Source: Octopus sinensis
Lineage: Eukaryota
Assembly: GCF_006345805.1 (NCBI RefSeq)
Contig: NC_043010.1
Span: 58,528,001-58,592,000 of the forward strand
Direction: 5' to 3'
DNA length: 64,000 bases
Shown here: positions 2,755 through 64,000 of the stretch, piece after piece
Position numbering within the stretch: the first letter of the stretch is position 1
How the letters are laid out: each line of letters begins with the position of its first letter
The notes under the pieces: model-generated
What the model was told of the DNA's origin: nothing
Databases searched by the model: none
Seen by the model: the letters and a program-made list of their open reading frames with translations, nothing else
Program-made: the position numbers and the translations under genes

Positions 2755-5178
2755 CAATATTGTATTGGGTGGACTCTTCTCCAGGGTACCCACGTTTGAC
2801 CAATCAATCTGGGACTCATACTGCGGGTAGAAATCTTCCTTACATTCCACAAATGGCATGTTTCTATTATTCATCTCAGAAGAGTACCTCACTGGGGTAC
2901 CAGGAATACTGCTGCTCTGACACGGTAGAGGTTGATCAATTCTGTTACATATAGCTGACCTATTAACACCTTTCCTAGTGTTCTTGGCAGAGCGAGACTG
3001 ACCACTGCTACATTTCACAATACACAGTGTGATCGACACTACAATCACCACAGCTACTATTACAGCTGCTACTACAAGGATAATCAATAATGGTACGTCC
3101 AGTGTTCTGTTCTTCTCTAAGTGGACAGTCGGCATCGGTGCTGATGTCTTGTTAGTGACCCTTAATGACAAAGACACAGTAGTTGTGGCTGACAACACTG
3201 GGCTACCGGAATCCTTGACCACAAGCACCAGTTCGTATGAGCCAGCATCGTTGAGATGAGGTGCACGCGAGAAAGACATTTGACCAGTTAAAGAGTTGAG
3301 TGTAAACAAGCGTTTATTGTTACCGTCAAGTATTCCATATTTGAGGAACGCATTTAAATGACTGTCTCTGTCAGACGCTCTAATCACAGTGATGGCATTG
3401 GTACTTTGCGGGTGGTAGTGGACATTGATATGGAAAGGGTCAGTTGTAGGGTAGACGAAATACGGATTATTGTCGTTTCTGTCTAAAACCTCAACAACAA
3501 CATTCGCTGTGTTATTCAACGACGGTTTACCATTGTCTTTGACAAAAACCTCAAACTTATACATGTCTTCTTCTTCTCTGTCCAATGGTATGTTGCTGGT
3601 AATAAAACCATAATCACTCACCTGGAACGGTATGTTATTTCTGTCTTTACTCAACAGTGAGAACGTCAGTTGACCAGCACTTGCCAGGTCTGGGTCAGTG
3701 GCATTGATAAAACCTATAGGAAAGTTTGCTTTACCATTCTCATAGGTGAGGAAGTGGAATGTATCTTTGGTAAATTGCGGTTGCACATCGTTCACATCCA
3801 TTACTTGGATTGAGATCTTTCTCTCCGTCTTTAAAGCAGGGCTTCCGTTGTCTTCACAGACAATTCTCATGTTAAAATGGTCTAATGTTTCTCTGTCAAG
3901 TGGTTTCTTCAGAATAATCTTGTATTCCTTTGATCCTAAATGTGAGAGGACAACTATATCATGTTCTAATTTACAACTCACTTCTCCATTTGCTCCAACA
4001 TCGTTGTCCACCACATTCACATAAGCTAGATAACTGCCCACTTTAGTCCCTTCGTAAATAGCTGCAGTGCCCTTCTTCATTTCAGATGCAAAATCTATCC
4101 CAATTTTGGGAGGATGGTTCTTTTCATTGAGAATATTCACCCGTACAATGGCAAAGGAATTTAAAGAAGGATTCCCTCCATCTTTCGCCTCCACATACAT
4201 CTTGAGAATATTCTTTGTTTGTGATGTTAATGGTTTTTCTACAAATAATTCCCCAGTTTGTTGGTTCAGTCTGAAATACTGTCTTGTGCGTTCTGGTGTT
4301 TTTGAACTCATAAAATAAGACACTTTACCATTATTGCCAGAATCTGGGTCTTTTGCAGACAATGTCAAAATGGGGTTGTTGTTAGGATGTGTATTTTTGA
4401 TGGAAATATTGTAAATATGTTTTGAAAAAACTGGTGAGTTATCATTCACATCAATTATTTTTATATGAACATGTAAGATTCCTTCTTTTGAAGGTTGCCC
4501 TCCATCATTAGCTATCACTTCTAAATTGTAACTATCTTGTATTTCTCTGTCTAGTTTGTCTCCAAGAACAATTCCTATCTTTGCCCCTCCAGTGATAGTT
4601 TTCCTCACAGACAATATAAATGGATCACTAAATTGTTTCTTCAATTTGTATGTAATTTCTGAATTTTCCATTCCAATATCTTTGTCAAAGGCATCTGGAA
4701 TTAATCTTTCGGCTCCTTCTCCATCATCTTCATCATATGTAATATTCAGTTGTGTCTGAGGAAACTCAGGGCTGTGATCGTTAATGTCTTCTATAATTAC
4801 TTTAATTTTAATAACTTTCAAAAATGTCTTCCTTCTACGTACAGCAACTTTGATGTATCTAACACAATCTGATTCATATGTACACAGTTTCTCAGCATCC
4901 AATGTTTGAGCCGTGTACAATTTACCATCTTGTGTGACGTTGAATAAATGTGAATTCTCTGTCCATTGCTGTTGCATTTGGTTGTATGTGATGAAGTTAT
5001 TTCCCACAAGAGAGTCCGTTTCTTCCATCTGTGTGTCAGCAGCAATATCCCCAACAAAAGTAAAGGGACTGCTTTCTTCTTCTACATGATAGCTCAGATC
5101 TACACAGACACAACTGTGTAGTAATAGATTGAGGACATTTGCAAGTAAGTATGTATTCCACACACAGCCTACTTCCAT
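2755..5178 (-). CDS. PCDH: Protocadherin A, large coding exon (signal peptide, EC1-EC6, TM, cytoplasmic region; 808 codons)
   Basis: ORF 2632..5181 has six cadherin repeats (DxNDxxP, LDRE, AxDxD, xDxG motifs) and a TM segment VPLLIILVVAAVIVAVVIVVSITLCIV. ATG at 5178 with an in-frame stop just upstream. Acceptor tttcag| gives exon start 5211; donor ATATTG|GTAAGT at 2755. The ORF portion beyond 2755 is intronic microsatellite read-through. Confidence 0.95.
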
Positions 5179-5409
5179 CACAGAATGTTAAATCATATCT
5201 CGTGAGTTTATCTGAAATTTAAGAAGAAAATAGAATGTTTTTATTGATGTTATGTTTCTTTGTTTATTTTAAAACAAATTGAATCCAAATTGGGGGAAAA
5301 ATTGTCTGTGGTGAGAATGATTTTATACAAAGAATGGTCACTGATTTGAATTGGCATTTTGTACATTCTTCTGACATTGACTTTAATAATAATGAAATTA
5401 TTGTATTCA

Positions 5410-5870
5410 GTGCTCAGGTGCACCACAACTTGTCAAAAGTGCGTATAAAGCATATGCAGTAATGTACAAATGTCTGGAAAGTGAACTGTGTATGAGTCAG
5501 ATACATGCTTGTGTGTGTATGGAGGGGAGAAGATCAGGTGTAGTGTTGGCAAATCTCAAGAAGCATGGAGGTTTTGAAGGATGCAGTGCTCCGACAACTA
5601 ACAACTGATGCCGGCAGTTTGTTCCATGCTTCAGCAACTCTTAGCGTGAAAAAAAGGTTTCCGAAAGTCATGGGAGCCGTGCTGTTTTCTGATTTTTTAA
5701 ACATGTCCATGGGTGTTAGACGGGTGGATTTTGAAAATGTGCTCAGAGTTATTGTTTGTAAGATGGTTAATAATTTTATGGGTGTCTGCCAAGTCAGCTG
5801 CCAGACATTGGAGTTTCAATTAGTTGAAAACAGACTTCTAAATGTTAGGAAATTCTTTGAGTATATCACA
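5410..5870 (-). mobile_element. CR1-type LINE 3' fragment
   Basis: Minus-strand translation FFTLRVAEAWNKLPASVVSCRSTASFK resembles the CR1 ORF2 C-terminus (FFxxRVxxxWNxLP). Confidence 0.6.
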
Positions 5871-6869
5871 TCTGTTTCTAGATTTAGATGCTTATATTAT
5901 CAATATATCATCTCAGACCCAGTCCTCTGGTGTGCTTTATTATTGTCACCACCATTTAGTTTTAAAGTCTAAGGTTTTGCAAACGTTTTGTCTTTACAAT
6001 GCCTTCAGCATTTTAAATGGAATGGAATACCTGTACCAATAATTAGTTTATATACTTTCGTCTGCAGAAAATATGTTACACTTTAAAGTTCTCATCATTT
6101 ATAATTGAGAACCAAAAATATCAATTGGACTTTTCTGGAATATCAGAGCCAAGGGATATTCATGGAAGATAACCGGATCTAAGATATGACAAAAGAGACA
6201 ATTATCTCCCTTGAATATTAATGACATCTTCATTACAATATTTCTGTGATTTGTGAGAAAAGATTGCATCAAAATATATATCTTGATGGCGAATAAAGCT
6301 GGCCAGGATACTGGCCATATTTCAGAAATTAGATTTGCAGAAATGTAAAGATATTAGAGGTTGTTCAGCTCAAAGACTTTACCAGATGAAATAATCTTTG
6401 AATACCAAATCAAGAAATGGTTCTCTAAGAGGGTCTGTTCACTTAGAAATAGCTACCAAATTTCCCTCAAATCACACTTTCAACATTTTAAAATGAATAT
6501 ATTGGTTAATGTAGAAAAGGATTCGTAAAAAGAATGTGATGTAGCCATAGTTGGAAGGTCTTCAATCATAAATCTCTTCAATCAAGGCTAACCTGGACTA
6601 TAGAATGATAATACCCAAATAAGGAATTAAAAACAGAAATGACTCCTTTAGTATTCCTTGTAATTTCAATAGATTCTGTGTTTTTGTAGAGAGAATATTT
6701 TTGGGGGTTGAAACACAATTTTATTGTTCAGTATCAATCATTCCTCTCAAATCCATTTCCTGATACAAGAATGGATTGGATTGGAATTGATTCTGAGGCA
6801 GGATTTTTAAGATTGGATGCTCTTTCTGGAAGAATCTAAGAAATGGAGGCATGACTAATTTGTAAAAGT

Positions 6870-62339: not shown

Positions 62340-62520
62340 GTAGATAGATATATAGATAGATAGATAGATAGATAGATAGATAGATAGATAGATAGACAGA
62401 CAGACAGACAACAGACAGATAGATGGCTAGGAAGACAGACAAGAGACAGGAAGAATGCAGACAGATAGGTAACTAGATAGATTGATAGATGGAGACAGAC
62501 AGATTGGCAGATAGATTATA
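62340..62520. repeat. (GATA)n/(GACA)n tract at the start of gene F last intron
   Basis: Directly visible; similar tracts at 2690-2740, 55208-55272 and 58870-58935. Confidence 0.9.
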
Positions 62521-62530
62521 AGTAACTTAC

Positions 62531-64000
62531 CAATATTGTATTGGGTGGACTCTTCTCCAGGGTACCCACGTTTGACCAATCAATCTGAGACTCATACTGC
62601 GGGTAGAAATCTTCCTTACATTCCACAAATGGCATGTTTCTATTATTCATCTCTGAAGAGTACCTCACTGGGGTACCAGGAATACTGCTGCTCTGACACG
62701 GTAAAGGTTGATCAATTCTGTTACATATAGCTGACCTATTAACACCTTTCCTAGTGCTCTTGGCAGAGCGAGACTGACCACTGCTACATTTCACAATACA
62801 CAGTGTGATCGACACTACAATCACCACAGCTACTATTACAGCTGCTACTACAAGGATAATCAATAATGGTACGTCCAGTGTTCTGTTCTTCTCTAAGTGG
62901 ACAGTCGGCATCGGTGCTGATGTCTTGTTAGTGACCCTTAATGACAAAGACACAGTAGTTGTGGCTGACAACACTGGGCTTCCAGAATCCTTGACCACAA
63001 GCACCAGTGCGTATGAGCCAGCATCGTTGAGATGAGGTGCACGCGAGAAAGACATTTGACCAGTTAAAGAGTTGAGTGTAAACAAGCGTTTATTGTTACC
63101 GTCAAGTATTCCATATTTGAGGAACGCATTTAAATGACTGTCTCTGTCAGACGCTCTAATCACAGTGATGGCATTGGTACTTTGCGGGTGGTAGTGGACA
63201 TTGATATGGAAAGGGTCAGTTGTAGGGTAGATGAAATACGGATTATTGTCGTTTCTGTCTAAAACCTCAACAACAACATTCGCTGTGTTATTCAACGACG
63301 GTTTACCATTGTCTTTGACAAAAACCTCAAACTTATACATGTCTTCTTCTTCTCTGTCCAATGGTATGTTGCTGGTAATAAAACCATAATCACTCACCTG
63401 GAACGGTATGTTATTTCTGTCTTTACTCAACAGTGAGAACGTCAGTTGACCAGCACTTGCCAGGTCTGGGTCAGTGGCATTGATAAAACCTATAGGAAAG
63501 TTTGCTTTACCATTCTCATAGGTGAGGAAGTGGAATGTATCTTTGGTAAATTGCGGTTGCACATCATTCACATCCATTACTTGGATTGAGATCTTTCTCT
63601 CCGTCTTTAAAGCAGGGCTTCCATTGTCTTCACACACAATTCTCATGTTGAAATGGTCTAATGTTTCTCTGTCAAGTGGTTTCTTCAGAGTAATCTTGTA
63701 TTCCTTTGATCCTAAATGTGAGAGGACAACTTTATCATGTTCTAATTTACAACTCACTTCTCCATTCGCTCCAAAATCATTGTCCACCACATTCACATAA
63801 GCAAGAAAACTGCCCACTTTAGTTCCTTCGTAAATCGCTGCAGTGTCCTTCTTCAATTCAGACACAAAATTGATCCCTATTTTGGGAGGATGGTTCTTTT
63901 CATTGAGAATATTCACTCGTACAATGGCAAAGGAATTTAAAGAAGGATTCCCTCCATCTTTCGCCTCCACATACATCTTGAGAATATTCTTTGTTTGTGA
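62531..64000 (-). CDS. PCDH: Protocadherin F, 3' part of large coding exon (end of EC3 to tail; 5' part outside window)
   Basis: ORF 62516..63976 is homologous to the other copies and open to the window edge; donor ATATTG|GTAAGT at 62531. Confidence 0.93.

Follow-up and report, generated by a model that had tools for sequence, protein, structure and literature searches.

How do the members of a tandem gene family come to carry the same small blocks of sequence in combinations that differ from copy to copy? The question is raised by a 64,000-nt stretch of the Octopus sinensis genome (C14:58,528,001-58,592,000; hereafter the window, whose coordinates are used unless C14 is stated), which holds six of the 11 close tandem protocadherin (PCDH) copies of an array on the minus strand. 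The copies lie 7.7-29 kb apart in the order I, H, G, F, E, D, C, B, A, Z, Y, with a 408-nt fragment past Y. Exon 1 of these genes, from the ATG to a GTAAGT donor, spans 2,424 nt (808 codons, phase 0) and encodes a signal peptide, six extracellular cadherin repeats (EC1-EC6), a transmembrane (TM) segment and most of the tail, and its copies are 96.4-99% identical to one another in pairwise nucleotide comparisons. A preliminary description, which counted six copies where the array has eleven and took no account of the frameshifts that copies C and E carry in this assembly, had proposed that the ectodomains are mosaics of shared cassettes. Our analysis supports, with a probability that we put at roughly 85%, the reading that this mosaic was left behind by germline interlocus gene conversion in old tandem duplicates, supplemented by unequal crossover on occasion.

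The peptide blocks on which the preliminary description relied are all present in the protocadherin copies, and its observation that the differences come in discrete shared blocks holds at the nucleotide level, where the variable sites of copies A-E form runs that follow a single partition of the copies and adjoining runs are incompatible (Table 1). Combining EC1 with EC2, all four possible types are found (M/TQL in A, M/SEI in B, R/TQL in D, R/SEI in E), and EC2 combined with EC3 likewise yields all four among A, D, B and E, so that the four-gamete test fails twice, as had been reported. Over D 39821-39870 the match with A 4708-4757 is complete (50/50 nt), which upholds the proposed tract while slightly shifting the interval given for A (4706-4768); B and C agree with this part of D at 33 and 37 of the 50 positions, respectively. 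The tract pairing E 53941-54000 with B 15341-15400 was likewise recovered (58/60). The island in EC2 that we call EC2a has at least seven allele classes, differing at up to 24/95 nt and freely combined with the classes of the EC3b island. The blocks stayed incongruent when the five copies outside the window were added, and the number of EC2a classes rose to seven.

That no single duplication tree fits these exons, as had also been claimed, is borne out by several tests. The pairwise homoplasy index (PHI) of copies A-E is 0.303, compared with 0.622±0.033 under permutation (2,000 permutations, P≤0.0005), and that of nine copies is 0.337 versus 0.588±0.022 (P≤0.0005). The Hudson-Kaplan minimum number of recombination events (Rmin) is 17 for A-E and 37 for the nine copies, among which 58% of informative site pairs are incompatible, with the incompatibilities spatially clustered. 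When the first 1,400 nt were divided into seven segments, each with its own maximum-likelihood tree, approximately unbiased (AU) tests rejected nearly all trees taken from other segments, the EC1 and EC3/4 segment trees being the only mutually compatible pair. A Sawyer-type run test singled out a fragment shared by D and A at 422-499 (global P=0.0005) and also flagged the pairs I-D and I-A over this block. Finally, the association between paralogue variants (r2) declines from 0.39 at distances of ≤20 nt to 0.09 at 51-100 nt; this decay within about 50 nt indicates short tracts, which single unequal crossovers cannot produce.

The homogenization is restricted to the exon. In local BLAST comparisons, 0-3% of the intron and 3' flank of A can be aligned to any other unit, homology to this copy breaking off after the first 6 nt of the intron; for F, the corresponding figures are 0-3% of the intron and 0-19% of the 3' flank (at about 80% identity). 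Exon 1 of A and F is nonetheless 96-99% identical to the other copies. The remaining non-coding DNA falls into the groups I/H/G and E/D/C/B, with partial homology of 70-96% identity where it can be aligned, while upstream flanks align for just 60-210 nt between most copies. A global MAFFT alignment of exons with 1.5-kb flanks had made all flanks appear random, a view overturned by the groups that local BLAST revealed. The introns of D and E are 96.5% identical, yet their cassettes differ and match those of A, B and H.

The closely related Octopus vulgaris, whose genome is a de novo Oxford Nanopore Technologies (ONT) assembly polished with short reads and whose lineage split from O. sinensis about 2.5 million years (My) ago (PMC10700109), has an orthologous array on OX597827.1, which we found through a 90%-identity protein cluster and joined from pieces without conflict. 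Non-coding DNA, 93-98% identical, gives one-to-one orthology for 11/11 loci. For EC1a and the KIG/EID patch, orthologues have the same cassette class at 11/11 loci; for EC2a this holds at 9/11 and for EC3a and EC3b at about 10/11. Since two independent assemblies agree on the cassettes at most loci, assembly chimeras, a possibility that had been raised when the mosaics were first described, are largely excluded. The orthologue pairs differ by 5-53 sites in the first 1,400 nt, with the excess located in tracts that are closest to another paralogue. Thus, O. sinensis G has, over 391-480, 21 differences from its own orthologue and 2 from O. vulgaris C, and B has 21 differences from its own orthologue and 2 from X/E; about twenty smaller tract replacements resemble these two. 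As such tracts are closer to other paralogues than to the orthologue, exchange continued after the species split. A twelfth copy, X, is present in O. vulgaris around OX597827.1:81,382,071 and absent from O. sinensis, where the counterpart site lies between H and G. The junction of this 7.85-kb difference is located within an intergenic repeat, where unequal crossover would be likely to place it, although an assembly collapse in O. sinensis could also account for the difference. Tree conflict, association decay over some 50 nt, tract replacement and the extra O. vulgaris copy together sustain the earlier suggestion of short-tract gene conversion or unequal crossover between paralogues.

What conversion has left behind differs sharply between the two halves of the exon. 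Codons 461-808, covering EC5, EC6, the TM segment and the cytoplasmic part, are about 99.4% identical in 23 exons of the two species, with synonymous divergence (dS) of 0.01-0.03, and from column 1401 to the end the paralogues diverge by 0.59% in O. sinensis and 0.68% in O. vulgaris and the orthologues by 0.57%. In the first 1,400 nt, divergence is 4.7% among paralogues and 2.0% between orthologues. Paralogue dS, estimated by the Nei-Gojobori method, runs inversely to the GC content at third codon positions (GC3), which is 0.442 in codons 461-808 and 0.307 in codons 1-460 (values by domain in Table 1). A rise of GC3 as dS falls is the signature of GC-biased conversion that was used for fugu (PMC1852091). 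Within the 5' half, the variable islands have dS of 0.28-0.64 and a ratio of non-synonymous to synonymous divergence (dN/dS) of 0.08-0.39, and because of this high dS and low dN/dS we regard them as old alleles that escaped homogenization and not as recent bursts; on the same values, positive selection was rejected as their source. Nor were donors for the divergent EC2a alleles found among 19 more distant paralogues, the best of which reach 70-79% identity, bar two 23-nt matches at 91-96%, and we therefore rejected a recent import of EC2a from other arrays. At column 1772 (codon about 590), O. vulgaris I, H, G, F and E, which are consecutive apart from X, have in common a non-synonymous difference (HYHPQ versus HYRPQ) that is missing from all O. 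sinensis copies and has the appearance of a young mutation spreading through the array by conversion.

A similar division is seen beyond this array and this genus. Two Argonauta hians proteins, P0003 and P0004, are 97-100% identical to each other from EC4 through the cytoplasmic part and 54% identical in EC1. In the former region they are 77-90% identical to the Octopus copies, so that the paralogues within Argonauta are closer to each other than to their Octopus counterparts there, while EC1 of P0003 follows orthology (82-85% identity to Octopus EC1, compared with about 54% for P0004). Judged from these protein comparisons, the pair reads as a textbook case of concerted evolution. A second O. 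sinensis array (C14:59,550,000-59,776,000, plus strand) comprises at least 13 genes that are 67-68% identical to the first array and show its architecture more sharply; the 3' 1.2 kb of their exon is 98-100% identical, two islands are 72-73% identical, flanks are unalignable and PHI is again significant (P≤0.001). Sharing of this design by a second array indicates that the regime is general for octopus PCDH arrays.

We propose that the units are old duplicates whose first exons would keep swapping sequence by germline interlocus (non-allelic) gene conversion, and whose number would be changed now and then by unequal crossover between intergenic repeats. Conversion would be complete over codons 461-808, amounting to concerted evolution, and patchy over EC1-EC4, where the tracts would measure some 50-100 nt. 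EC1, EC2, EC3 and the EC3/EC4 junction would thereby retain islands of ancient divergence, combined differently in each copy; by analogy with vertebrate clustered protocadherins, these islands may persist because selection keeps adhesion specificities distinct. Several points weigh against this account. The boundaries of the segments compared in the AU tests were set after the data had been seen. Divergence of the 3' half is the same among paralogues (0.59-0.68%) as between orthologues (0.57%), and therefore the sinensis/vulgaris pair alone does not demonstrate species-specific homogenization. Selection on the islands is inferred, dN/dS gives no sign of positive selection in them, and the failure to find an outside donor for EC2a fits the retention of old islands without proving it. 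Individual tracts, above all those of 3-6 sites, could moreover be polishing artefacts in either of the two short-read-polished assemblies.

The domain organization of the products allows the islands to be set against what is known of protocadherin recognition. The protein of copy D matches Pfam PF00028 (Cadherin) in 5 stretches (E=6.2e-68) and PF08266 (Cadherin_2) at its N-terminal end (residues 28-113, E=1.1e-9); the closest solved structure is 6vg1 (E=2.9e-88, residues 29-670, aligned over EC1-EC6), with further structure matches to protocadherin-10, gamma-B4 and alpha-7. As read from the translation, EC6 is followed by a hydrophobic run, LLIILVVAAVIVAVVIVVSITLCIV, and then by KCSSGQSRS, a predicted single TM segment and short tail. 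On these matches, the array products are identified as protocadherins of the cadherin superfamily. The trans dimer of vertebrate protocadherins is antiparallel and built from EC1-EC4, with EC1 touching EC4 (PMC5001838).

In the octopus array, the EC1a island (MQQQWTE or IQRQRTG) is perfectly associated with the patch at the start of EC4 (PKIG or PEID), in 23/23 exons from 12 loci, and the same coupling is found in the two Argonauta proteins; variants of EC1a occur in Z (LQQEWME) and Y (IQHRRTD). The sequence between the two patches is fully reassorted, and of the 2,536 pairs of sites separated by more than 400 nt, just two clusters reach r2=1, one being this coupling and the other joining EC2a sites 437-461 with a minor-count-3 site at column 2424. 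The charges of the coupled patches are complementary, R/R occurring with E/D and E with K. Among 118 octopod protocadherins, covariation of charge between these positions was absent (rho -0.09, P=0.31, rank 199/609 windows), and charge complementarity was accordingly dismissed as a family-wide rule. The 6vg1 alignment is gapped at EC1a and so gives no mapping of this island onto a known interface. A functional coupling draws on only about 12 semi-independent loci, and simple retention of two ancient lineages could give the same pattern. It is conceivable, though we think it unlikely, that conversion acts as a selected cassette shuffler, in which a common chassis from EC5 to the cytoplasmic part is combined with ancient EC1-EC4 islands that are recombined into new homophilic codes, those that contact each other in the dimer being kept in phase. 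If true, the array would offer sequence-only evidence for a vertebrate-type EC1:EC4 interface in mollusc protocadherins, and vertebrates and cephalopods would have converged on the same genetic handling of recognition diversity. The coupling provides a concrete, testable prediction on the binding interface.

Adaptive cassette shuffling, the germline form of the idea put forward in the preliminary description, holds that reassorted EC1-EC4 islands were favored as new homophilic specificities, which would make conversion an evolutionary source of diversity in neuronal recognition. The islands do fall within the part that serves recognition in vertebrate protocadherins, EC1-EC4 (PMC5001838), the EC2a classes (at least seven) combine freely with those of EC3b, the EC2a cassette was swapped at two loci within about 2.5 My, and the coupling of EC1a with the EC4 start in every exon is what would be expected if just compatible combinations survive. 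Reassortment is, however, an automatic by-product of patchy conversion for which selection is unneeded, and the island dN/dS of 0.08-0.39, the net loss of diversity over most of the exon and the lack of charge covariation across the 118 octopod proteins all count against such a role, which we consider improbable. A programmed or somatic process of templated diversification, as in the conversion of chicken immunoglobulin pseudogenes or in antigenic variation, is exceedingly hard to credit: all that speaks for it is that frameshifted copies are conceivable donors, and these differ by species without forming a distinct donor class; the combinations stand in the germline references of two species, mostly identical (9-11/11 loci per block); and there is no asymmetry of expression site and donors, every unit having its own promoter-side flank, splice donor and terminal exon.

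Germline interlocus conversion must also be compared with explanations that dispense with it. Unequal crossing-over alone would account for the additional O. vulgaris copy, whose junction falls in a repeat, but each such event makes one junction and carries the flank along, whereas here Rmin is 37 within 1.3 kb, tracts measure 50-100 nt and flanks do not track the exon blocks (the near-identical introns of D and E accompany cassettes that match A, B and H); as a sole mechanism it appears very unlikely. Hardly any weight attaches to a scenario without exchange, in which recent tandem duplicates mutated independently under parallel selection. The tandem units in the same orientation and the long non-coding homology between the neighbors D/E and I/H would agree with it; against it stand the spatially clustered incompatibilities at 58% of site pairs, blocks that are identical at synonymous sites too, the near-identical exons of A and F between unalignable flanks, and island dS of up to 0.5-0.64 in the same exon as a 3' half with dS of 0.01-0.03. 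An artefact, either from mis-assembled paralogues or haplotypes or from short reads of one paralogue "correcting" another, is made easier to imagine by the 96-99% identity of the exon 1 copies, by the short-read polishing of both assemblies and by indels of 1-2 nt in O. sinensis C, E and H that are absent from O. vulgaris and make residual error plausible. Nevertheless, each exon is placed between unique, mostly unalignable flanks that are just 2.4 kb apart and can be spanned by long reads, assemblies of two species made with different platforms and pipelines agree on the cassette class at most loci and blocks, up to 24/95 nt between alleles are too many for polishing noise, and the same allele classes recur in the Argonauta proteins; we see little chance that the mosaic as a whole arose in this way.

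The picture closely resembles that described for vertebrate clusters. In fugu Pcdh2, the 3' regions of variable exons are >99% identical among neighbors and the 5' regions divergent, with a boundary at EC4/EC5 and raised GC3, which has been attributed to repeated regional conversion (PMC1852091), and conversion in zebrafish clustered protocadherins has been described as well (Noonan et al., 2004, as cited in PMC1852091). The octopus array has the same >99% identity at the 3' end, divergent 5' part, boundary around EC4/EC5, raised GC3 in the converted part and diversity in EC1-EC3. Unlike in fugu, the octopus units are complete genes that each possess a last exon, the expansion took place independently in a molluscan lineage, and the 5' part is a fine mosaic of shared islands and not simply divergent. 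In Xenopus and in mouse and other mammalian clusters, dS is highest in EC2/EC3 and lowest in EC5/EC6, which was read as domain-dependent conversion (PMC4978886); dS in the octopus array is likewise low in EC5/EC6 and highest in EC2. However, whereas EC2-EC3 appear conversion-free in those clusters (PMC4978886), the octopus EC2 and EC3 islands have moved between paralogues, giving a fine mosaic, a modest step beyond the published vertebrate picture. Every feature of regional gene conversion that we looked for was found, the greater closeness of paralogues within a species being seen in Argonauta, and the mechanism is ordinary interlocus conversion. Mosaics from interlocus conversion in other tandem families (PMC3966226) show the same short-tract patchwork, failure of the four-gamete test and homogenization beside maintained diversity, in a different gene family with a different function.

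For cephalopods, the relevant passages of previous studies describe PCDH arrays that arose by whole-gene duplication without shared constant exons and suggest conversion from tree shape (PMC9068888; PMC6339937); the boundary, the dS and GC3 gradients, the scale of the tracts, the stability across species and the reassortment of islands described here do not figure in those passages. The exon cassettes of Drosophila Dscam1 and promoter choice in vertebrate Pcdh clusters offer a further parallel, in that a combinatorial ectodomain serves homophilic neuronal recognition, but these act per cell at the level of RNA or transcription, while the octopus mosaics are fixed germline differences between genes. 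The preliminary description had gone on to propose that diversity is generated at the DNA level, in a new way distinct from these two. We found no support for this claim, since it compares the germline evolution of separate genes with a choice made per cell, which are different levels, and since the same regional conversion has been published for vertebrate clusters; in the octopus array homogenization dominates, the islands are old alleles and most combinations have been stable for ~2.5 My. Nothing in the two germline assemblies indicates a dedicated or somatic diversity generator.

Each unit of the array, in both Octopus species, has a private last coding exon of 24 nt that encodes LPTRIKK followed by a stop and is preceded by a pyrimidine tract and an AG acceptor, the intron being 0.6-2.6 kb long (17 kb in Z, the exception). 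The units are therefore complete genes and not variable exons that feed a shared constant exon, an arrangement that these private exons rule out, in agreement with PMC9068888. The array thus resembles clustered Pcdh genes in its 11 tandem, same-orientation large exons encoding ectodomain, TM segment and proximal tail, and departs from the vertebrate type in that these are not spliced to one set of constant exons. Except in A and F, the 1.5-2 kb of DNA behind the last exon, probably a long 3' untranslated region, shows 84-96% identity between most units.

As assembled, exon 1 is intact in O. sinensis Y, A, B, D, G and I and lacks 3 nt in frame in F, while frameshifting indels occur in C (two), E (five, all within the first 300 nt), H (one; C14:58,610,856-58,613,302) and Z. 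Those of C, E and H are absent from the O. vulgaris orthologues, and O. vulgaris D (+1/-1) and B (+2) have other indels, so that frameshifts are not common to both species. There are no nonsense substitutions in the frameshifted copies, and the frameshifts of exon 1 may be residual long-read indel errors or mark very young pseudogenes. Copy Z (C14:58,520,476-58,522,817) has no intact 5' end in either species, with a stop at codon 9 of the frame used, and its last exon is 15-17 kb away, compared with 0.6-2.6 kb elsewhere; it may be a pseudogene common to both species or use an alternative start. The public O. sinensis gene models P0126, P0131 and P0135 either are incomplete (352 and 489 aa) or merge several copies into one protein of 4,660 aa, which is probably due to the frameshifts. 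Octopus protocadherin counts built on such models will be off, and O. sinensis models need care. Between the genes, microsatellite-rich DNA extends across the whole window, and a 388-bp tandem duplication at 32977-33781 (97.6% identical) yields two near-identical open reading frames (ORFs). Five intergenic ORFs were considered as possible transposon sequences and discarded, having no Pfam match.

Table 1. Positions of genes, islands and shared DNA in the window (window coordinates), runs of sites with one partition of the copies (alignment columns), and divergence and base composition of exon 1 by domain
Feature	Position	Strand	Paralogue dS	GC3	Remarks
Copy A last coding exon	620-643	minus			LPTRIKK-stop; preceded by pyrimidine tract and AG
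Copy A exon 1	2755-5178	minus			Intact, 808 codons; signal peptide, EC1-EC6, TM, cytoplasmic part
Copy B last coding exon	10735-10758	minus			LPTRIKK-stop
Copy B exon 1	13394-15817	minus			Intact
Copy C last coding exon	22962-22985	minus			
Copy C exon 1	25235-27656	minus			Two 1-nt deletions, three ORFs; O. vulgaris orthologue intact
D intron, exon 2 and downstream DNA	35752-37867	minus			Common to E (49868-51993); only long non-coding homology between window units
Copy D last coding exon	36860-36883	minus			
Copy D exon 1	37868-40291	minus			P0001, reference; intact
Homogenized region on D	37868-38911	minus			Codons 461-808 (EC5, EC6, TM, cytoplasmic)
EC3/EC4 junction island on D	39176-39235	minus			Codons 353-372; NHAPEID versus NHPPKIG
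EC3b island on D	39386-39430	minus			Codons 288-302
EC2a island on D	39812-39877	minus	about 0.5		Codons 139-160; FPQTQLNITYDEDDGEGAERLI
EC1a island on D	40064-40096	minus			Codons 66-76; NQIQRQRTGNS versus NQMQQQWTENS
Copy E last coding exon	50971-50994	minus			
Copy E exon 1	51994-54410	minus			Five small deletions in first 300 nt; O. vulgaris orthologue intact
Copy F last coding exon	60815-60838	minus			
Copy F exon 1, 3' 1,470 nt only	62531-64000	minus			Rest past window end; full copy with 3-nt in-frame deletion
Partition AB/CDE	columns 213-246				
Partition ABD/CE	columns 312-333				
Partition ACD/BE	columns 434-481				C unique
Partition ACE/BD	columns 591-603				
Partition BCD/AE	columns 766-910				
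Partition ABF/CDE	columns 996-1089				
EC1			0.108	0.34	
EC2			0.223	0.22 (0.218)	
EC3			0.105	0.29	
EC4			0.117	0.37	
EC5			0.010	0.42	
EC6			0.016	0.46	
TM/tail			0.030	0.44	

Although protocadherins expanded independently in octopus and in vertebrates, this array follows the same regime as the fish clusters, in which the chassis of EC5-EC6, TM segment and tail is homogenized, diversity is restricted to EC1-EC4 and GC3 rises in the converted part. Indirectly, this suggests that labor is divided in octopus protocadherins as in those of vertebrates, with EC1-EC4 serving recognition and the membrane-proximal part being common to all. Since old duplicates appear young after conversion, whole-exon gene trees and dS dating of cephalopod PCDH expansions are unreliable, and the history of these genes is to be read only in the islands or in the non-coding flanks.

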